This document shows positions 5,857-39,772 of a DNA stretch of 64,000 nucleotides, piece by piece. This DNA is from Chlorokybus atmophyticus (lineage: Eukaryota; Plantae; Mesostigma and Chlorokybus algae), in NCBI GenBank assembly GCA_009103225.1, contig RHPI01000818.1:124001-188000 (forward strand), read 5' to 3'. Position 1 is the first letter of the stretch. Every line of letters starts with the position of its first letter. The notes below the pieces were generated by a model. The model searched no databases. It was not told the DNA's origin and saw only the letters and a list, made by a program, of their open reading frames with translations. Made by a program: the position numbers and the translations under genes.

Positions 5857-8522
5857 ATGGCTGAAGTTGTGCTGTCGTCCGCTGTCTGCTGCTTGAGCAG
5901 TAGTAAAAGCATCACAAGCAGCAGTTTGGGGCCTAGCTGGCAGGGAAGGAGAGGCGTTAGGCAGTCAGCTGTTGGATTGGTGGGTGGGACGGGGAGCAGC
6001 AAAGCAGGTAGTTCAAGTAGTTATCGTAGCTTGTCATCTAGGTTGCGCAGCGCGTCTTACAGTGCAAGGCGGGAGAGGCGACGAGGGTGGGGTGTTGCTG
6101 TGCCGACCCAAGCTCGGACCGACGCTGATGTGAACGTGGGAGAGTCTGTCAAGGTTGATGTAGGTGTACCGCCGCCGCTGCCGGAAGTTATTGAGCACAC
6201 CAAACGTAACGCACACAAGCTAGAACCCGAAGGTGAGCTTAACCTTGCTGTGCCACTAGCTGTACAGCTTACCCACCCCCCCCACCCCCCCCACCCCTAG
6301 TGCGGGGTGGTATCCCTTTTCCCTCTTCCTTTTGCTGTGTGATTCTTGTTGAACGTTAAAGCAACATACCATTATTGTGCTGCAGTTGCCACAGCTATGG
6401 TTGCGTGCATGGTGTCTCAGCACCTCTGAAAAGTTGATTGAGTATGTACGTGGAAAAGGATGCTAGAAACAACAGCACCTGAAGCTGGTTGTGTCATAAA
6501 CTTAACCTACCGGTACGCAAGGAAAGATTGAATGTTATTTGTAGGGTCACATGGCAAGCAGCAAGGGATACTGCAGCGATTGAGTGGCGTGCTGGGCGTG
6601 GAGCCAAGTCCAGACATTGCAGCGATAGCTAGTGTCTATTTTGTGCAGGGCGTGCTAGGGCTGTCTCGCTTGGCGGTGTCCTTTTTTCTGAAAGATGAAC
6701 TACATCTAAACCCAGCGGATGTAAGCAAGCATTCCTGTGTCAGTAAGCGTGTCTTGTGTACATCTTGGTGAAATTTAAACCAAACCCCTTTTGCGACAGG
6801 TCGCTTTGCTGACGAGCATTGCTGCATTCCCATGGATGGTCAAACCATTGTATGGTTTTCTGAGGTGAGTTTGCACCGTCACCACAGCCGCCACTGGTTT
6901 TCTCTTGGACCTGCAGCTTGCAAATAGTAATGTGCGCCGTGCGCAACAGTGATGGCTTGCCCCTGTTTGGGTATCGGCGACGGTCATACCTGGTGCTGTG
7001 CGGACTTTTGGGCGCCGGTGCTTGGGCTTCATTGGCAGCACTTGTTCACACACCTATGACAGCTGCGGTAGCAGTGACAGTGTCATCGCTGTCTGTAGCT
7101 GTGGCAGATGTGGTAAGTGCCACCTAACAAACTGCTATATTGTGTCCACATGTTGTGGCCATGTGGCTGTGATGCACTCCTGCTCCTATGAACTGCAACG
7201 ACTGGTGCACAGGTTGTGGACTCCATGGTCGTGGAGAGGGCTAAGGGCGAGTCTCAAGCTGCCTCAGGCTCCCTGCAGTCTCTGTGTTGGGGTTCCTCTG
7301 CCATTGGAGGCATCCTCTCTGCGTACTTGGGTGGCTTCTTGGTAGAGGAGTATGGCCCGCGGTTTGTGTTTGGCCTTACGGCTGCGCTGCCTCTCATTAC
7401 CTCAGCAGTTGCTATCTTGGTGAATGAAGACAAGGTTGCTCCTGCGTCAGAGTCTGGTGAACTGGAGGGCATAGCGCTAGTGAAGCAGCAGGTACATTGT
7501 GCTTGCTTGTGTCAAGTTGTGGTCTATGTGACTACAGGGAAGCAAGTTCACGCGCACGTCGTTAATGCAACTACAATGTCGCAGGCAACATTACTCTGGC
7601 AAACGGTTAGGCAGAGGAGCATTTGGTTACCAGCGCTGTTCGTGTTCTTGTGGCAGTCTACTCCACATGCTGAGACAGCCATGTTTTACTTCACGTAAGC
7701 AATGCAGCTGGACGTGTTTGTATGCCAGTGTACTGCACCTACTGAGGCAGCGATGTTTCAGCAATGCCAAGAGATAATGGTATTTACTTGGAAATCCTGA
7801 CGGTTGCATTCTGCCACGTAGGACAAACAAGCTTGGCTTTGGCCCGGAGTTTCTCGGCCGAGTAAGGCTGGTCACCAACCTGGCGTCACTTGGAGGCGTC
7901 ACACTGTACAATACATCACTTAAGGATGTTCCCTTGCGTAGAATTCTTTTCTGGACCTGCATAACTGGTGTTGGTGTTGGTCTCACTCAGGTATCCCTCA
8001 TCCTGTGCTGTTGACACAGTACTGATGACTTGCGAGTGGCATGTCACTGTGTTTCATCAAAATCACTTGTGTGCATATCTGCTTCGCAGCTGGTGCTCAT
8101 CACTGGAGCCAACCGATCTTTGGGAATTAGCGACCAGTGGTTTGCAATGGGTGACACGCTTGTCATTACCGCTTTGGGTCAGGTATGTGCATAAGTTGCG
8201 CAACGTACATACAAGCAGTCTATTGGTGACATCCTGCTCACTTGCTGTGCGACAGATTGCTTTCATGCCCATCCTCGTGCTGGCAGCACAGCTGTGTCCA
8301 GACGGTGTAGAAGCGACATTGTTTGCAACATTGATGTCAATCAGCAATGCTGGTGGCGTCTTTGGTGGCGCTTTGGGCGCAATGCTCACAAAAGCTCTCG
8401 GCGTGACAAGCACGGAGTTTGACAACTTGGGGTTGCTGGTTCTGCTTTGTAATCTGTCATCATTGCTGCCTTTGCCCTTTTTGGCGTGGCTTCCTTCAAC
8501 TGCGCCAGAGAAAAAGGAATAG
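5857..8522 (+). CDS. plastid folate-biopterin transporter (BT1/FBT family, MFS), multi-exon
   Basis: Ser/Arg-rich transit-peptide-like exon 5857-~6232, then [116 protein letters not shown]. Stop at 8522. Confidence 0.95.
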
Positions 8523-8590: not shown

Positions 8591-10251
8591 CATATGCTAA
8601 TTGTAGAGGTAGACTTGTGGCAAGACTGCTGCTTGCTACGCAGGCGCTCATTGCGCTTTGTTACGTTGTACATACACTAGAGACCATGCTGGCTTGTGGT
8701 CTTGTAGATGCTGCTTTGGCTGGTGTGTAACAAGCACGGCAGTCCATGCTATTTGCAACACGCATGCTGTGCAGCGAGGCCAACCTTATAAGCCTAAGTC
8801 TCTAGTTGCTGCTGATTTACTCAGACACCTTGCCAGTACCCTCCATCCCCCTCCTGCCCTACCTTTCCTCGACTTTGCTGGCCTGATATCATTATGTAGT
8901 ATGCACCTATGCTGGTCATCAGTTGCAGTCGGTGCAGCTCTAATACTGCTCACACCTCTGTATTTCTCTCCTCTGCGCCTCTGCAGGTGGAGACAGTGTT
9001 TGTTTGCATAAGTCCCACCCCTCATCTCTACTATTGCTGCCTGACTAGCATTGCACATGGTTAGTCCCAATAGCTGGCCCCTTAGGTGTGATTGGTTGTA
9101 GTAGTGATTGGGTAGGGAGGGGATGTTCCAGGTTGTGCGTGTAAGTGTGTGTACAAAAACGCAAAGCGTATAGTAGACATACATGGTTAGCACTCAGCAT
9201 GTCACAACTACTACCCTACAACAATAGGGCTTACATCATTGACCGCCGGGCTTATAAGTTTATGAATTGACCCATTACTTTTACCACTACCATTACACCC
9301 CACCCCCCGTTTGTCATGTGTGCATGCATTGTAGTTGGTATCAGTAGTTATTTGCACAACACTAGCGGCTCGAGTCTTCGTAGGGTAGTAACAACAACAG
9401 CGTGTGCAAGTGCAAGTGCCTGCGCGTGTGTACCTGCGTGTACCCACGAAGCACACTTGCAGCATGCACACGGATGGTGTGCATACGCTCAACATGCTGT
9501 AGTAGAGAGTGGCACACACACCAACACTCACCTCACGGCTATAACAATTTGACCATCTGGCTACCACCAACTCTACCACTGCCACTACAACCCCATCCCG
9601 TCAGTCATGCATGCTTACGTGAGGACTGTAGCAAGACAAGTGACTGGCATGGACAACTCACACTACCATACACAATCAATAAACTCATGCAGGTATCATC
9701 GCGTTTCCTGCGATACAACCGCGTATCAGAGCCGACGCGACACATTGGCTAGGACGACCAGCCGACTATGTGCGTGTGCAAATGCAAATGTGCGAGTGCT
9801 TGCGTGTGTTGGCAGAGTGATAGTGTGTGCGTTTTGCTTTCTTGTCGTCTACGGTTGTCAGTCTGGGGTGAGTGAAATTATTATTATACCTTTCGTGCGA
9901 CTTGTTGCGTAAACTGCCAATCGGTGCTGTCTGAGCAGGTTGTGCAAGTGTGTGCTGCTTACAGTGGGGCTACCGGTAGACGTGAAGAACTGTGTATGCC
10001 TATGTGCACCTCTTGCTACTTCATGAAAGCTCTGATTTTGAAAAGGCTCTAATTAAGCTCTTGTTCCACATGACGAAAGTTCCGCCATGTTAGCCGAATC
10101 GGCTAAGCCGACAGGCTGCATCATGCTGCTTGATGATTGATGCAGCCATTGCGTCAGAGAGTCCGAGTCAGACTCGCGTACGGAGCATAGTTCAGCAGTC
10201 TCGGAGACTCGGAGAGTGTTCAATTACGTAATTGAGTACTCTAAGACTTAC

Positions 10252-10351
10252 TGAGTTTCGCTCGCATGCCGCATGCAGTGGCATCGTCAGCGTCCTCCGC
10301 CGCCGCCGCCTCCTCGTCGTTGGCAAGGCTGCGGTTGTCGGCTGAAGTCAT
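10252..10351 (-). CDS. candidate first coding exon of an unidentified gene (MTSADNRSLANDEEAAAAEDADDATACGMRAKL)
   Basis: ATG at 10351, GC-rich open frame, ending at a consensus GTAAGT donor (10251-10246). Divergent from the RRM gene ATG 203 bp away. Downstream exons not resolved. Confidence 0.3.
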
Positions 10352-10554
10352 CTTAGCTTAAATGTACTGTACTTCTGTCTGTATTACTCTCTCTCTCGTG
10401 CTCCCTCTCGCTCTGTGGCTCGTCCAGCCGCACCTCACCTTTGCCTAAAGCCTTTACCATACTGGTCGGCTGCTTGCGGGGTTTGCTGCCGAGGGTTACG
10501 TTGTCCGGCATCGGCACTTACTGGCAGTATCAAGCGCTTGGCATGTAACCTCGA

Positions 10555-13500
10555 ATGGATAGTGATGGTGAAGGTGAGTATGTCCATGCCGCACTCTAGC
10601 TCAGATCAGCTCAGTTTAGCTCAGCTCAGCTCAGCTCAGTTTAGCTCAGCACAGCACAGCTCGGGCCAGCGTAGCCAAACTCAACTGGGATAAGCTGCGC
10701 TATAAGGTGAATTCCGCTGAGCCGGTTGATTAGTTAGTTAGCTGATGAATTGGACGACGCCCATCAAAATGCTTGCAATGGTGCAGCGATGCTGATATAG
10801 CTGCAAGCTGGTTTCAAGCTCGCTTACAGATAGTCGCGGTGGTTTCAGCACTGTAAGACCTGAACCAAATGTCAACCCGAGAGGTTTGCATTGCAGGGGT
10901 GAAGGAGCTGTGGGTTGGCAACATCGACAGCCGCGCTACTGAGTTTGACCTTTTTCGGTTCCTAGATGAGTACGCAGTTGGCATGGTGGATTGCAGGCTG
11001 TTTCCCAGAACCTCGCCGATCACTTACGCTTTTCTCACAATGAAGGATTGCCAGGTGCGTTCGTGTACGTTACAACCACTGGCTTTCACTTTTGCTGCTT
11101 ATAATATATGACAGCCCAAGACAAACTCGCCTGTTGTGTGCTGGCATGCAGGCAGCGGCTCGTCTATTTGCGAGGGCTGATGCACACCCGTTGATGTTCA
11201 TGGGCAGGCGACTCTCTGTGCGGATGAAGCGGTGTTTTGTCCCGTCAACACGAGGTGTGTAATTGTTGAAGGAATTGACAATTTGCGTCTTTAGTTCGTT
11301 GCCATTATGGTTGACCTTGCATTGCATCGCAGGTGGCTCCGCTGGTCCAAGCACAAGCAAACCTGCTGCAGGCTTGGAGGTGAGAGCACTGTTTTGTGTG
11401 CTGTTATCTATTCTGTAGCTGTCTCCTGCTTCTGTTACTCGTCTGCGGCACCTGCATTGACGTACTGCAATTGACAACCAGAAGCTGAAGCTTGATATCT
11501 ATGATGTCCTGAGAGCAAGCCCTGAACCTTTGGAGCTCTCTAAACTCCAAAGTGCCTTTGCTGCAGTGAGTATCCTCAACAGTTGACACACTCATTGATG
11601 CAATTGCATTGCGGCTGACTCGTATTCTACGGTTGTGTCAGCATCACGGGAGGCAGCTTGATACGACCGCTTTGGGAACACTATCTCAGGTGGTTACGAG
11701 GCTGCTGCCGGATGAAGTGCACATTGCGCACGTGTGGAAGCGAGTGGGGAGAGAAGCAACCTGGGTGGAAAACGTTGTGGTGTTGAATGGCCCAGAGGTC
11801 CCCAGCCATTGGCAGGTATGTTGGTTATGGGCTATGCTGCGCAACCCCCGTGAACATGACGGTGCCATAGGTGTATTCGCGGGGCCAAGTTGAGGCGGCA
11901 CAGCGGAGTCTTTTTAAGGAGTTGAAAAAGGTCTGTAAGACAATGGCTTTCAGCTTGTGCTTTACATAAGGTGTTGTATAACATCAAGCGTGGCAATAGG
12001 AGCTTGACAGCGGACGTCACTACCTCTCACTGCCTGCTTCCAGCGCGGATGATGGGAACGGTCCTGACATCGCTAGCTGGTGGGACTTCTTGTGCCGGCA
12101 TTCTTACCAGACCATGAGGTATAGTGCACTGCCAACATTATTTTGCGGGGACACACCCGGTCATGCTTACCTTGCCCGATAGGTTTGAACGTGGTAGAAT
12201 TGTGCTGGACAGAAAAGGACCCTCAGCTTTGACAGAGCTGGAGCAGGTAAGTGCATGCATGCATTTGGTAGCTCTTTTAGTGCACATAGTACCTGCAGTG
12301 AATAGCTATCTGGGTGTTGCTGTGACTCCAGTTGCCCATGCCACGCTGCGAGCCGCTGCGTCGTGAACGCATGCATACCACACAGACATGCATTGCATCC
12401 ACCGACTGAGCTTGCTTTGCACATCCGCATGTGTTGCATGTCAGCTGTGGATAGGATACCTGCAGCAGGTGGCATGTGACGTTGTCACCTGCAAGTGCAT
12501 GCTTCCGCAGGAGGAGAGGCAGCAGAGGCAAGACAGCAAACGAAAGAGGATAACAGACCGGTTGGCTTTCCCAGAGGGCCAGCAGATGGCGCGCGAGGAG
12601 GAGCCTTGTCGCAACACGCGCAGTGATTTAATGCACAGAACAGAGCATTCGGATGCGGGTGCATCAGGCCAGCCAGATAGCAAAAGGAAGAAAAAGGAGA
12701 TTATGCTTCGACTAAGTTTTCCGGAGGAACTGAGGCGTGAACCGAAAAAGAAGTCAGTGTTGGATCGATTACAGCTGCCGCCAATGCTGCCAAAACTGAG
12801 CCCTGTCCCTGAGCCCCCTCGAATTGTTGATCCGTCCCCATCAAGCTCTCAGTGGGCTCTGCAAGTTAGTGCTGCCAAGTTGTCACCGACTGAGTGTGCG
12901 GATATGTTCTTAGAGACTTTCGCCGTTCACCCGCAACAGGTGAGATTCGATAGAGACCAGGCTGGACCCTCAGACCAGTTTGCTTATGCGCGGGCTGAGC
13001 GGCGCCACGAGGGTGGCACACGCAGTAATAGGGCTGCAAGCCCACATGGCAACGAGGCCAGCGACGACCAGACCATCGAGTATGATGCTTTAGGCAACAG
13101 CCAGGCCACTACAGACGGGCTTTACATGGCTGTTGACCAGCCTGCCAAGAGTGACCAGGCCAAAACTGGCCTGGTCACCACCGAGTATGCTACCAACCCA
13201 ATACCAGGGAATGGAAGCACTGAACAGCATCGCAGGCCAGACTGTGCAGTGCCAGCTGTTCATGCACAAGCCATCATCGTGAATGCGGGTGTTGATGTGG
13301 TACAACAGCCACAGCCGCAACCGGTAGCTATGAAACAGGCGGATGATGAGGTTGAAGAGGGTGAGATCGTTTCCGACAACATGGTGCCTGCTCCCAGAAG
13401 CAACAACCACCACACCTCAATGGGGCAGCAGCACAAATCCCCGCTTGTTAGTAGCAATGTCAAGGCGGAAGATGATGGCACAGCCCTCAAAAAGGGGATC

Positions 13501-13902
13501 AGTTACAACCCCTTGCCGGTGATACACGCCCCAGCAGGCAGCAAGCCCCCTCAACCCACATTGAGCGTGAGCGAGGGGGAGTCCTTCCTGCCTTTGTCAA
13601 CATCGCAAATGGCGGTGCAGCCTCTTAAACCCTCCCGGCGGATCAAGATCCGCCTCGAAGGGTGTAAGGAGGTCACCACCGTGAATGCGGCTGCCATCTC
13701 CTCAGTGCCTGAGCTGCTGACTACAGTGAGTGCACGATTCGCTGCGCTCGGCGTGAAAGTGCCTCCCGTGTCAGAGCAGACACTCCTCTATGTGGATCAA
13801 GACGATGACATGAACATTGCTGCTCCAGATGAAACTTGGGAGGAGATTGTTGAGCGTGCCAAGCAGATCATTGTGAGGATGAAGGCGACTGCTGCTTCAT
13901 AG
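10555..13902 (+). CDS. RNA-binding protein with RRM + LOTUS/OST-HTH + disordered region + C-terminal PB1 domain
   Basis: Exons join in phase: 10555-10573 (MDSDGE G) to 10897.. GVKELWVGNID (RNP2)..TYAFLTM (RNP1); then KLKLDIYDVLRASPEPLELSKLQSAFAA|HHGRQLDTTALGTLSQVVTRLLPDEVHI (LOTUS-like); small internal exons; long last exon ending RRIKIRL..LLYVDQDDDMNIAAPDETWEE (PB1 basic strand plus OPCA motif). Stop at 13902. Confidence 0.8.
10598..10660 (+). repeat. degenerate (GCTCA)n pentamer repeat in intron 1 of the RRM gene
   Basis: agctcagatcagctcagtttagctcagctcagctcagctcagtttagctcagcacagcacagc. Confidence 0.9.
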
Positions 13903-15451
13903 CGCGTGGGTGGTTGACGGAAGAGGGCCTGGCAACAGCACTCGCAGCTCATGTCATGAGACGGGACAGGTAGTTGAGAGGGTGGCGACTGCTGCGTCAT
14001 AGCGCATTTTTTTTTGGGTGTTGATATGAAGGGCCTGGCGGATGCACTTGTGGCTTATATCACGACATATAGGCACAAGGCCGTTTACTTGCTATGGGTG
14101 TTCAAGGCTGGTAGGGATCTCTGCACAGGCTTTCGTAGTTGCGGCGAGTAGGCTTATATGTAGGGTTGAGCGCGCACAGGTGGCAGCGAGTCTGCACCTG
14201 CGTTTGCGCCTCTGTCTGCTGTGTAGTTGTACATGATGGACAGGCAACAGTTGGGCAATTCACTGCCCAGGTTGTGAAAGTGTGTGTTGTGGCAGTCACG
14301 AGTATCCTGTGCAAACTGTTCTTTGCTGTGTTTCCGATGCGCCCCCCATCAAGGTGATCTGTCTGCATCTCATGCCGCACATTTGGCGACCGTTGCAGCC
14401 TTGCGCTTGTGGTGGCCTGGTGGTGTCCACTGCATGGGAGATGGATGGTTTCAGACACTGGTGAATTGTTTTGCAATTTCAGGCCTTGTGCAGGCGTTTG
14501 AACAGCAGTGCACGTTGATTCATCAATGAGTCCCTGTCAATGGTGGGTGTCGACCAACACTGTCACTGGTTGGCTGGAACTGTTACTACAAGCAAGAAGA
14601 ACATACATGTCGTTGACACCTCTGCCCTGCCTCTGCCCAGCACGCACTAGCGATTGCATTCGCATTCATGTAGGTTAGCAGCCCAGTAGGCTAGGTGCTA
14701 GAGTTTGTGCAGTGAGGCTGTTGAAATGTTAGACTTAATCTGTCAATCATGGTTCGACACTGGGTTTTTGTTCCTATACTTGATAGCGTTGCTGATTGTG
14801 ACGCATTCTGTGCAGGTGGGACTGGGGGTGCCCCACCTGACACCTCTCTCTACAACACCTACGCATCCATGTTGACATGCTCTGATACTTGTGTATTGCA
14901 TGCTTCCCTTGTTGAGAGTGAGGTGCGAGTGGCGATGCGCGCACAGGGCACAGGGGCTTGGATCAGCTTGCATTGCATGCCTTGTCCTGTTTACTACGTG
15001 GACAGTGCGTAAGGGTTGACGCAGCACAAGACCACAAGCAGCGACGGAGCAAGCGGAAGAAGCGCAGGGAGGCGGAGAGGGAGGAGAGGGCGCGAGAGTT
15101 GTCGCTGCTGCTGCTCATGTTGACGTTGGGGGCAACTATCAACCGCTAACTACGGCCCTTGTGGGCAGGTACTACGTGCATGTACTGACTGCCATGGCTA
15201 TCGGGGTGTGGGTAGTAGAGTAGGAGGTGAAGTTAGTGAGTAATAGTAGCCCGGTGGTCTACATAGACAGCATGTGAACTGCATGTTGACATCATGCCGG
15301 GTCCAATGCATGTGTCGCGCATTTTCTGTACACTAGCCAACCCCAAGTTATGTGTGCAACGTATGCGCACGGCGAATACATGCACAAAAGATATATGCTG
15401 TTGTTCTGCCTACACTATCAAATGCATAGGTGTGCGGCCTCTCTCTTTACT

Positions 15452-15974
15452 GGATGTGCAGTCATGTTATGTATTGTTCATCATGCCTATCCAAACGCAC
15501 TGCACACACACGGCACACACACAGCATGCAAGCACTACACGACAGCAGCCGCCGGCAAAGTGTCCTCCGCCGTCAGGGCCGAAGTGCGACGCGTGTAGGT
15601 TGGAGTTGGACTGGTGTTGCCGAAGCAACATCAGCTTTCAAGCTTCGCGCAGAGTGTCATTACATAACGCAGAGCGCAAAGTGTACGCATTTATGGCTAT
15701 GCTCCACTACAGGATGTGCAGTCATGCTATGTATTGTTCATCATGCCTATCCAAACGCACTGCACACACGCGGCACACACACAGCATGCACTACAAGCAC
15801 TACACGACAGCAGCCGCCGGCAAAGTGTCCTCCGCCGTCAGGGCCGAAGTGCGACGCGTGTAGGTTGGAGTTGGACTGGTGTTGCCGAAGCAACATCAGC
15901 TTTCAAGCTTCGCGCAGAGTGTCATTACATAACGCAGAGCGCAAAGTGTACGCATTTATGGCTATGCTCCACTA
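15452..15974. repeat. near-identical ~260-bp direct tandem duplication (15452-15709 / 15712-15974)
   Basis: Both copies begin ggatgtgcagtcatg and end ttatggctatgctccacta, with only a few substitutions and a small indel. Confidence 0.95.
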
Positions 15975-36227: not shown

Positions 36228-36806
<579 letters not shown>

Positions 36807-39772
36807 GTGTTGTCGCAGGGGAACCACTTGCCACTGAAGACGATGATCTGCGATCTATGCTCAGGAAGGTGCACATGTGTGAATGCTTGACATGGGTGCC
36901 AACAAGTATGTAGCATGCCGTTCAGGCTTGGCTCAGGATGTTGTCTTGCTGTTGTCGTGTCGTGAGTGTGTGCAGTGGTCTGCATGGGTATGAATAAGAA
37001 AATTATCTCGTCAAACTGAGTCCATGCCAGTATGCATGTCTGCAACATCCTGTGTGTGCGGGCGCGTGCACACACACACCAACTTGTCATTGTGCGCGTG
37101 TGCTGGCGTGCTTGCGCATATACACACACAACTTTTCAGTGTGTGCGTGTGCCTGCATGCGTATGCGTCATGTGCGCACGCCTGCTGTCACCTTTACATC
37201 AGACAGGTGAGAGAGGAGAGGAGTGAACACACTTGTGGGTGCGTTAACAAGTGTTTCTTGTCCAATCCAAAAGTGTAAACACACTTGTGGCGATGGCACA
37301 CCCACATGTGCACTTACCTTTCACATTCACAAGTGTGTCACTTGCTCCTTAGAAGTGATTACACTTACAAGCGCCAAACACGCCCAATGTGTGCCATTTG
37401 TGCCTGTACATTGTGGCTGTATTTGCACTTGTGGGTGTGTTTACAGTATGCTCCTTCTGTATGTTTTCGTGCTGAATGACTTGGGGCGCTCTGCTCTTTG
37501 AGTACAGGAATGAACACTCAGTAGAACACAAGCGTTGGCTCTCTCGCGCTTTTCTACTCATGGATACATCACATTGCTTGCACTGCTATACGTCAGTTGG
37601 GCCTGTATATATATCATCACTGCTAACACTACCTACACCCGTGTCCATGTTGGTGTGTTGACACCCTCCCTCGCGCGCGCGTGTGTGTGTGTGTGTGTGT
37701 GTTGGGGGGGAGGGGGGTCTGCGTGTGCGTGTGCATGTGCGTGCGTGCGTGCGTGCGTGCGTGCGCACCCACATGTCTGTGCGTGTGTGAGCAAGCGCGT
37801 TGGTGTGCGCATGTGCGTGCGTGCGTGCGTGCATGTGTGTGCGTGTGTGTCTTTGTGTGCATGAGCGCACACACGCACATATACCACCAGCCGCGTGTGC
37901 ATCTGCGTGTGCGTGTATTGCGCGCATGCGTATGCGTGTGCGCGCGTGCGAGCGTGCGAGTTTGCTTGTGCCAGCGTTTGCGTGTGTCCGACTTGGATGA
38001 ATGTTTGTTTGTATACCAAGCTGGCCAATCGACATGGTGGTGCATCTCAGACCGCCACAATCCAGCACGTCGGCGACGGTGCGTCGATCGTACTTTCAGA
38101 GATACGCTTCATGTTGGGTGGGTGCGAGAGTGGTTGTGCATGTTGCATGTTGTATGGTGCGACCGGGGCGATCATGGGCACAGGTGATGAGTCAACACAT
38201 CATGAGAGTGACTTGTTGGGTTGCTGGAGGTCATTGCCGTTGGTGTTGTGGCATCTCGAGCATGCATATCATAACCGCATGATGTACTGAGAGACATGCC
38301 CATGTGTGCGTGCATGCATGTAGATACACACACGCAGACTCTCTCTCTCTCTGACAATATCAATCTACTCCAAAAGCGTGTCACTTCTGCTGTTATGCGT
38401 ATCACGCGTGTCACACACTTGGTGTGTTACACGCTGATATAACAGAGTACATGAGAGTGGTTTGCACTACATTTACATCAGGGTGTACCACACCGTCGTA
38501 GTGTTGCTTCAGTATGTACACTGGTGTAGTGCGCATGACCATCACTGCAACTGTGCGCACACACTTACAAGACAGCAATCAATACACCTGCCTGTCCTTT
38601 CTTTTCTTGTTTGCCTTCTCTCATCCATGTGTGTTTTACTCTTACTCTTGATGCAGATTCTCCAGATGTCGCCATCAACAACTTCATGAGGCTCAGGTCT
38701 GAAAGGGAGGCCGCGGCGGGTTGCACGTACGTGTGGTTATCAAGCGCAAGCGCGCGCATATACACTACTCGCATCGCGGGGATGCATGTTTTGTGCACTG
38801 CAATTTGCGTTGGTGCAAGGCAGTGCTGCATACATGTACATAGGTTGTAGTGTAGCTTGTGCAATGGCGTTGACAATGGTGGGGTTTGCCTGTCACTTGC
38901 TGCAATGTCGACAACAATAGTACTGATACCATTGCTATGTATCTCACATCGTTGCAACGCTCATCAACAACAATGACAACAACTGGTTAACACGCTTGGC
39001 CTTGGTGATAATGTTGTTGTTGGTGGTCCTCAACAATCCATCAACGCTTGCCTGCATTACAACGGTTCAAGATGTGCGCAACATGCGCACAATGCCACTG
39101 AGGCGGCGACACAGGGTTGCACGCGAGACATGAGCTGCCACATAGTGTCGTCTACTGCACGGCACGCACCTGTTGATGACTTCTTCATTTCATCACTTTT
39201 GGCAAAGTCAGTTTGAGTTGGGTTATGTGCGTACCTTATCAACTCGGCTTGGCAACAGCACGGGCCTCTGCCAGCAACAAATTGATGTGCTTCAAGTGAC
39301 AGGGGGGAGAGGGTCAACAACGGGACTTGTTGTGTTGCTATAAGCGCTGCAATGGTGGGTGTGCACACGCACGCGCGCAAAAAGAGGTTTCAAAGAGTTT
39401 GGTTGAGCGTTACCTTCATCAGGCTCCGACATGGAGCGTGCCAACCTGCATTGCAACGACAAAGCTATCAAGGGGCTGGGCATGATGGACAATGTTGTGT
39501 TGCTCACATATCAAGAAGGACACCGTGACTGAATGTGACACGAACCGGTTCTGTCTGAGGTCTTTCATCCAATCGGCGCAGGTCAACCTTGACCCTGCTG
39601 TTAGCGCTACGCCAATGTCTGCTAGATTATCCTGGAGAGGCGTCCTGCAAACGGGTGCACTGCCGCTCTCATCTCATTACGCCCCGGGCGTCACTGGCAA
39701 TCACCAAATGCGGCTCCTTTGATGAGTGTTACTGACTACCTGTAACTTTGTATTGTGTGTGTGTGTATGTGC

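Follow-up and report, generated by a model that had tools for sequence, protein, structure and literature searches.

The closest described systems to the gene treated here are plant proteins in which an RRM is combined with a LOTUS (OST-HTH) domain, namely rice MEL2, maize PAM1, moss PpLDCP3 and Arabidopsis AT3G52980, together with rice ANK+RRM+OST-HTH+UBI (RSSG8). This group belongs to the Viridiplantae and has RNA-granule or RNA-processing roles. In the plant RRM+LOTUS family the RRM serves RNA binding, the LOTUS domain serves CCR4-NOT, and the terminal domain serves localisation or effect; for maize PAM1, the LOTUS domain has been reported to bind CCR4-NOT and the RRM to bind RNA (PMC13187813). 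A catalogue of OST-HTH proteins from 2010 contains a plant RRM+OST-HTH+RING cluster, comprising MEL2 (Os12g0572800), a Physcomitrella CCCH+RRM+OST-HTH+RING protein and a Selaginella RRM+OST-HTH+RING protein, as well as rice ANK+RRM+OST-HTH+UBI proteins. PB1 is absent from both the text and the full architecture tables of that catalogue. Conversely, a survey of PB1 domains in eukaryotes describes eight plant PB1 families, none of them with RNA-binding partner domains, and leaves RRM and LOTUS unmentioned (PMC7051960). Here, we describe a gene of Chlorokybus atmophyticus, located on the + strand at 10555-13902 of a window of 64,000 nucleotides from contig RHPI01000818.1, which encodes an N-terminal RRM, a probable LOTUS domain, a long linker and a PB1-like C-terminal domain. 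We propose, with a probability of about 0.55 for the whole of the mechanism set out below, that its product is a lineage-restricted, multivalent multidomain RNA-binding adaptor of Chlorokybus.

The coding region is made up of ten exons encoding 739 aa, and a frame check on the sequence revealed no internal stop. The exons are:

10555-10573, + strand, exon 1, with the start ATG at 10555
10897-11054, + strand, exon 2
11152-11254, + strand, exon 3
11333-11379, + strand, exon 4
11482-11565, + strand, exon 5
11642-11815, + strand, exon 6
11871-11930, + strand, exon 7
12000-12118, + strand, exon 8
12183-12246, + strand, exon 9
12511-13902, + strand, exon 10, with the stop codon at 13900-13902

All nine introns have GT..AG borders, and their lengths are 323, 97, 78, 102, 76, 55, 69, 64 and 264 nt. 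An in-frame TAA at 10546-10548 lies just 5' of the ATG, and there is therefore no earlier protein start in this transcript. The spliced model is identical to the 739-aa JGI Chlorokybus protein P0001 (eukprot jgi/Chlat1/1981/Chrsp158S02279); the phase-consistent model of an earlier, sequence-only reading and the peptides quoted in it were found at these + strand coordinates and in this protein. The same reading had left the co-transcription of the exons to be confirmed by RNA. All splice joints (9 out of 9) are present at the exact model positions in intron-less contigs from two public runs, which stem from two studies (2013 and 2021) and are presumed to be RNA runs; exons 1-8 are covered by one contig, and the junction of exons 9 and 10 is found in another. 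As these contigs lack the genomic introns precisely at the GT..AG borders, they can only derive from spliced RNA. The gene is real, spliced and expressed in Chlorokybus, a member of the class Chlorokybophyceae (Streptophyta). Chlorokybus is an early-diverging streptophyte alga.

The protein can be divided into the following parts, of which those downstream of the RRM are assigned at the strengths discussed below:

10897-11254, + strand, RRM, aa ~8-90, exons 2-3, with RNP2 LWVGNI and RNP1 ITYAFLTM
11365-11885, + strand, LOTUS/OST-HTH-like winged helix, aa ~105-200, from the end of exon 4 through exons 5-6 to the start of exon 7
11886-12246, + strand, aa 201-276, predicted helix followed by a beta-hairpin (low-confidence secondary structure)
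12511-13626, + strand, linker, aa 277-648 (~370 aa), hydrophilic, delimited by composition
12538-12573, + strand, linker motif copy 1, KRKR-ITDRLAFP, aa 286-297, from a pattern search
12682-12723, + strand, linker motif copy 2, KRKKK-EIMLRLSFP, aa 334-347, from the same search
12745-12780, + strand, linker motif copy 3, KKK-SVLDRLQLP, aa 355-366, from the same search
13627-13899, + strand, PB1-like beta-grasp, aa 649-739, with K655 at 13645-13647, Y703 and D705-x-D707-x-D709 at 13789-13809, and D716/E717

With very high confidence, on the basis of sequence comparison, the RRM at aa ~8-90 can be regarded as established. The aromatic positions of RNP2 and RNP1 are kept. An exhaustive phmmer search against 1.84 billion representative proteins returned a sole foreign match, P0002 (E 6.5e-4, aa 6-104), and Pfam recognises three RRM_1 domains in P0002 at E 3e-38. 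An RRM of P0002 aligns with aa 9-104 of the Chlorokybus protein across the whole domain, at 29% identity and a pairwise BLASTP E of 1e-9. It is this alignment with a Pfam-validated RRM that confirms the N-terminal RRM named in the sequence-only reading. Pfam RRM_1 on the query itself remains under its cut-off of 20.7 bits (E 0.11-0.22, 11.9-12.8 bits), an exon-by-exon Pfam scan of the gene gave a weak half-RRM only, and the matches of the region in the PDB sequences are mostly RRMs (E 0.15-1).

Three lines of evidence, each of them below a decisive level, agree that aa ~105-200 form a LOTUS domain, which makes this assignment highly probable. Pfam OST-HTH (PF12872) was the top family at each of five segment boundaries (E 0.0061-0.017, 15.4-16.8 bits), with DUF7516 as a second sub-threshold match on the same residues. 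The language-model neighbours were led by an OST-HTH cluster (0.85, 178 shared features), followed by further OST-HTH, MARF1_LOTUS and Egalitarian winged-helix clusters. Structural comparison was made with a low-confidence AlphaFold single-sequence model of aa 1-285. With this model, Foldseek placed the LOTUS domains of TDRD7, MARF1 and TDRD5 among its best rows (E 0.06-0.3), and the top six VIA alignments were LOTUS domains only, covering 66-76 residues at Z 6.1-6.6, where a Z below 8 is not decisive. These were TDRD7 (6.6, 72/76 residues), Oskar (6.4), TDRD5 (6.2), the Oskar NTD (6.2), Tejas (6.1) and a further Oskar NTD (6.1), and the rows below them were generic winged helices.

The region that follows, aa 201-276, has no match to a Pfam family. 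In the low-confidence model, aa 199-218 are modelled as a helix, past which lies a helix-hairpin-helix, and SelB-type tandem winged-helix alignments by VIA extend to aa 261-264 at Z ~5. Judging from this model, the ~80 residues from ~aa 196 may be structured, either as a helical extension or as a second winged-helix-like unit. The extended LOTUS (eLOTUS) class has a C-terminal alpha-5 extension that is required for Vasa binding, and plant LOTUS domains have been reported to be without it (PMC5458760). Recruitment of a DEAD-box helicase, as postulated in the sequence-only reading, is therefore unlikely, and we consider it to be the least supported part of that proposal.

The PB1 domain is defined by a strand-1 lysine, an OPCA core of the form D-x-D/E-x-D/E and a strand-3 tyrosine (PMC7051960). 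In the C-terminal domain of the Chlorokybus protein, K655 lies within RRIKIRL, in a predicted strand at aa 653-658, where it corresponds to the lysine of the PB1 basic face. Y703-V-D705-Q-D707-D-D709 aligns with YVDYESD of ARF5 and thereby provides the OPCA acidic face; it is followed by D716-E717-x-W-E-E, comparable to D-D-P-W-E-E in ARF5. A phmmer search against 177,635 PDB sequences gave matches below E 0.1 to the ARF5 PB1 only (6l5k, E 0.013-0.019; 4chk, E 0.07), in an alignment that extends from helix 1 to include the OPCA motif. Shape comparisons with a low-confidence model of the domain point in the same direction. The best ten Foldseek rows were all PB1 domains of ARF5 or ARF7 (E 0.3-2.6), and AUX_IAA, ARF or PB1 clusters made up 5 of the 10 rows of the Atlas shape search (TM 0.38-0.49). 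A wide VIA search of 48,161 chains, which is independent of Foldseek, contained seven PB1 or PB1-like rows in its top 50 (Cdc24p twice, TFG, MAP2K5, Par3-NTD, Bem1p and p62) beside ~13 other beta-grasp domains, all at Z 3-4.4; in a second look, VIA gave Z 4.3 for the Cdc24p PB1 and Z 3.4 for the IAA17 PB1. We hold with high confidence that the domain has a beta-grasp fold, consider its homology to PB1 likely, and regard it as probably a type-AB PB1. A single stray Pfam match to Rpf1_C at the C-terminus (E 0.18) was discarded.

The LOTUS and PB1-like segments are order-like in composition, in contrast to the linker, which has a value of 0.22 for order-promoting residues and a hydropathy of -0.86. 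Its entropy of 4.05 bits corrects the earlier description as a low-complexity region of ~400 aa: by composition, the ~370 aa are probably disordered, yet not of low complexity. No Pfam family matches the linker. In each copy of its triple motif, a stretch of basic residues leads into hydrophobic-x-[D/L]-R-L-x-[F/L]-P; as the copies were already in view when this pattern was drawn up, a shuffle test of it is indicative only. Neither a family nor a paper was found for the RLx[F/L]P motif, and in sequence its basic runs resemble nuclear localisation signals (NLSs). An identification as EAR motifs was dropped, as none of the three copies fits LxLxL strictly.

In the proposed adaptor, the RRM would bind single-stranded RNA, and the LOTUS domain, being of the minimal type, would bind structured or G-rich RNA or recruit an mRNA-processing complex such as CCR4-NOT, comparable to PAM1 and fly MARF1. 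Recruitment of CCR4-NOT has been reported for Drosophila MARF1 (PMC6168497). The ~370-aa linker, presumably disordered, would carry the three RLx[F/L]P motifs with their NLS-like basic runs, and these basic motifs may permit nuclear access. The PB1-like tail, with a putative basic face (K655) and a putative acidic OPCA face (D705/D707/D709), would dock head-to-tail on itself or on other PB1 proteins, which would give rise to a multivalent ribonucleoprotein (RNP). That the protein would bind RNA and dock through PB1, what its LOTUS domain would bind and whether it would enter granules or condensates are points that we infer from what is known of the respective families.

A number of observations weigh against this reading. 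The OST-HTH score is under the 23.8-bit cut-off and covers positions 2-44 of the 71 in the profile, and the LOTUS segment found no LOTUS domain when searched against the PDB sequences. Pfam PB1 (PF00564) and AUX_IAA (PF02309) had no match to the C-terminal domain at any of 8 boundaries, with E up to 10. Plant PB1 domains typically have an arginine in strand 2 as part of the basic face; here the strand predicted in that place (aa 664-668) reads VTTVN, without an arginine, and K662 is the only basic residue near it. The AlphaFold model of aa 1-285 has a predicted local distance difference test (pLDDT) score of 39.8, reaching 53-75 for aa 110-150 only; the single-sequence model of the C-terminal domain, with a pLDDT of 59.2, shows no more than strands 1 and 2, helix 1 and a long helix at its end. 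The fold matches of both segments accordingly rest on unreliable coordinates (Z <7, TM <0.5), and neither model had a Foldseek match that reached E 0.001. The three NLS-like runs suggest, as far as sequence patterns go, a nuclear rather than a cytoplasmic-granule role. Finally, there are no homologues with which conservation of the LOTUS and PB1 segments could be tested. When the last exon, aa 645-739 or aa 1-285 served as query (E up to 10), word-seeded searches found the protein itself only and neither an orthologue nor a paralogue, no relative beyond the RRM was present among the 1.84 billion representative proteins, and NCBIfam gave no match. There is therefore no alignment for AlphaFold, hhalign or conservation analysis.

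The domains named in the sequence-only reading consequently stand in part. The LOTUS domain has the support of Pfam OST-HTH (E 0.006) and of the top six structural matches, set against a score below the cut-off and a low-confidence model. The two-faced PB1 retains K655, the OPCA core and the ARF5 PB1 match, and lacks a Pfam PB1 match and the strand-2 arginine. Modelling of both segments by AlphaFold, which had also been suggested, yielded weak LOTUS and PB1 neighbours at the low pLDDT values given above.

Among the alternatives, the one that survives best retains all domain calls and rejects the self-polymerising granule scaffold: the tail would be a heterotypic docking module for other PB1 proteins of Chlorokybus (ARF, RAV, NBR1-like proteins, kinases or other orphan PB1 proteins) and not for itself, in a protein with a nuclear role. 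The KRKR, KRKKK and KKK runs with their resemblance to NLSs fit this alternative, as does the finding that the nearest neighbours of the tail in sequence and shape are the PB1 domains of ARF and Aux/IAA proteins. It is further in line with the action of maize PAM1 on the nuclear chromosome axis (PMC13187813), and with the presence of type I/II PB1 domains in the ARF and RAV proteins of Chlorokybus (PMC11685440), both of which are candidate PB1 partners. However, PB1 domains with two faces often self-associate, as seen for p62, TFG and ARF5 (PMC7051960), and the NLS reading is pattern recognition only. Heterotypic docking alone is on the unlikely side.

A second alternative takes the C-terminal domain for a generic ubiquitin-like beta-grasp, comparable to the terminal UBI of the rice proteins, which would link an RNP to the ubiquitin system and would not polymerise. 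Fusions of OST-HTH with ubiquitin-like domains are catalogued in plants, and the Pfam PB1 models remain without a match. The language-model neighbours of the domain are mixed beta-grasp families (GRHL1_C, Ubiquitin_GT-1, ANKRD40_UBL and PB1), all at or below 0.80, and the ~13 beta-grasp domains other than PB1 in the top 50 structural matches are likewise consistent with it. Against this, the PDB sequence matches below E 0.1 are PB1 domains only and align on the OPCA motif, the domain has the strand-1 lysine as well as the D-x-D-x-D core, and PB1, ARF and IAA domains lead the Foldseek and Atlas shape searches. We consider a generic ubiquitin-like domain quite improbable. It is very unlikely that the RRM alone is real and that the LOTUS and PB1 likenesses arose by chance in a fast-evolving, largely disordered orphan, for although all LOTUS and PB1 scores are under curated or conventional significance, both AlphaFold models are of low confidence and no homologue shows conservation of the two segments, both domains had been named beforehand in the sequence-only reading, Pfam, language-model features and structural alignment converge on LOTUS, phmmer, VIA and Atlas converge on PB1, and both segments are order-like in composition, unlike the linker.

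The proposed adaptor may be taken one step further: an RRM-LOTUS cassette would here, for the first time in a natural protein, be fused with a two-faced PB1, forming a polymerising RNP scaffold that arose in the earliest-diverging streptophyte lineage. This is a tentative extension, and we would not call it likely. A bolder and more speculative step would start from the last exon by itself, which, with its three NLS-like and RLx[F/L]P motifs, linker and ARF/IAA-like PB1, recalls the layout of Aux/IAA proteins (EAR motif + KR + PB1) and could link RNA regulation to the PB1 network of ARF and RAV in Chlorokybus. In the literature, no paper was found that joins a LOTUS domain with a PB1 domain. 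The single paper retrieved for OST-HTH and PB1 was irrelevant, its PB1 being the first polar body. The novelty claimed for LOTUS+PB1 in the sequence-only reading holds insofar as no published or catalogued fusion was found; the plant RRM+OST-HTH family (MEL2, PAM1, PpLDCP3 and AtC3H18) had been missed.

Provided that the domain assignments are right, the protein would be a natural test case for an idea widespread in condensate biology, namely that RNA-binding modules are turned into a scaffold by a fused, head-to-tail polymerising domain. If true, RNA binding would be a ninth partner context beside the eight plant PB1 families, and by the time of the earliest streptophyte algae the RRM-LOTUS cassette would already have been paired with more than one kind of C-terminal effector. 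In practical terms the gene is of limited reach, being an orphan with an entirely inferred function. To our knowledge, Chlorokybus is not a genetic model.

Intron 9 (12247-12510, 264 nt, + strand) is kept in a 319-nt contig (12218-12536), which is found in both runs at a depth below that of the spliced form, and translation of the retained intron leads to a stop at 12364-12366. Such transcripts may encode a product reduced to RRM+LOTUS, with linker and PB1 missing, may be a target of nonsense-mediated decay, or may merely be precursor RNA. The 5' untranslated region (10251-10554, + strand) is at least ~300 nt long by the contigs and contains four upstream ATGs. Three of these open short upstream reading frames, at 10266 (31 codons), 10273 (27 codons) and 10362 (28 codons), and the fourth forms a minimal ATG-TAA at 10543-10548, which hints at translational control. 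Intron 1 contains an (AGCTC)13 microsatellite at 10598-10662, which can alternatively be read as a 25-nt unit repeated 2.6 times.

Upstream of the gene, at ~5857-8522 (+ strand), lies a gene of the BT1 family (folate-biopterin transporter), two exon open reading frames of which match PF03092 at E ~1e-29. Downstream, at 15448-15974, a 265-bp unit is present as two tandem copies with 97% identity, and overlapping open reading frames repeat the same peptide. Further away in the window, a (TG)291 array at 36229-36810 (582 bp, 99% purity) is the cause of a spike in GC/AT skew at 36-38 kb.

Among known systems, aa 105-200 are structurally closest, on the low-confidence model, to Oskar, TDRD5 and TDRD7, which are Vasa activators with an extended LOTUS domain. 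This class possesses the alpha-5 extension needed for Vasa binding, unlike the LOTUS domains of plants as reported. With the animal protein MARF1 (NYN, RRM and tandem minimal LOTUS domains), the Chlorokybus protein has an RRM and LOTUS of the minimal type in common, but its predicted LOTUS domain is single, there is no NYN nuclease, and a PB1-like domain is added. With the type-AB (type I/II) PB1 domains of ARF5/ARF7, Aux/IAA, p62, TFG and Cdc24p, the tail has in common its length of ~90 aa, the C-terminal position, the strand-1 lysine, the strand-3 tyrosine and the D-x-D-x-D OPCA core; unlike them, it is not scored by the Pfam PB1 and AUX_IAA models and is missing the strand-2 arginine.

The plant RRM+OST-HTH group resembles the Chlorokybus protein in its RRM, a closely adjoining single LOTUS domain, a long linker and a C-terminal interaction or effector domain. 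Exhaustive and word-seeded searches gave no sequence similarity to any MEL2, PAM1 or LDCP3 member, and because of this, common descent with the plant RRM+LOTUS group is not shown. In contrast to that group, the Chlorokybus protein has neither ankyrin repeats nor a CCCH finger, only 7 aa precede its RRM, and its C-terminus is PB1-like without a RING by Pfam, whereas that of the plant proteins is RING or ubiquitin-like. Within the literature and the 2010 catalogue, a scope in which "never catalogued" stays unproven, the PB1-type tail and the lack of N-terminal ankyrin or CCCH modules appear to be new, while the layout of RRM, LOTUS and a C-terminal interaction domain, even one of the beta-grasp kind, is already known in plants.

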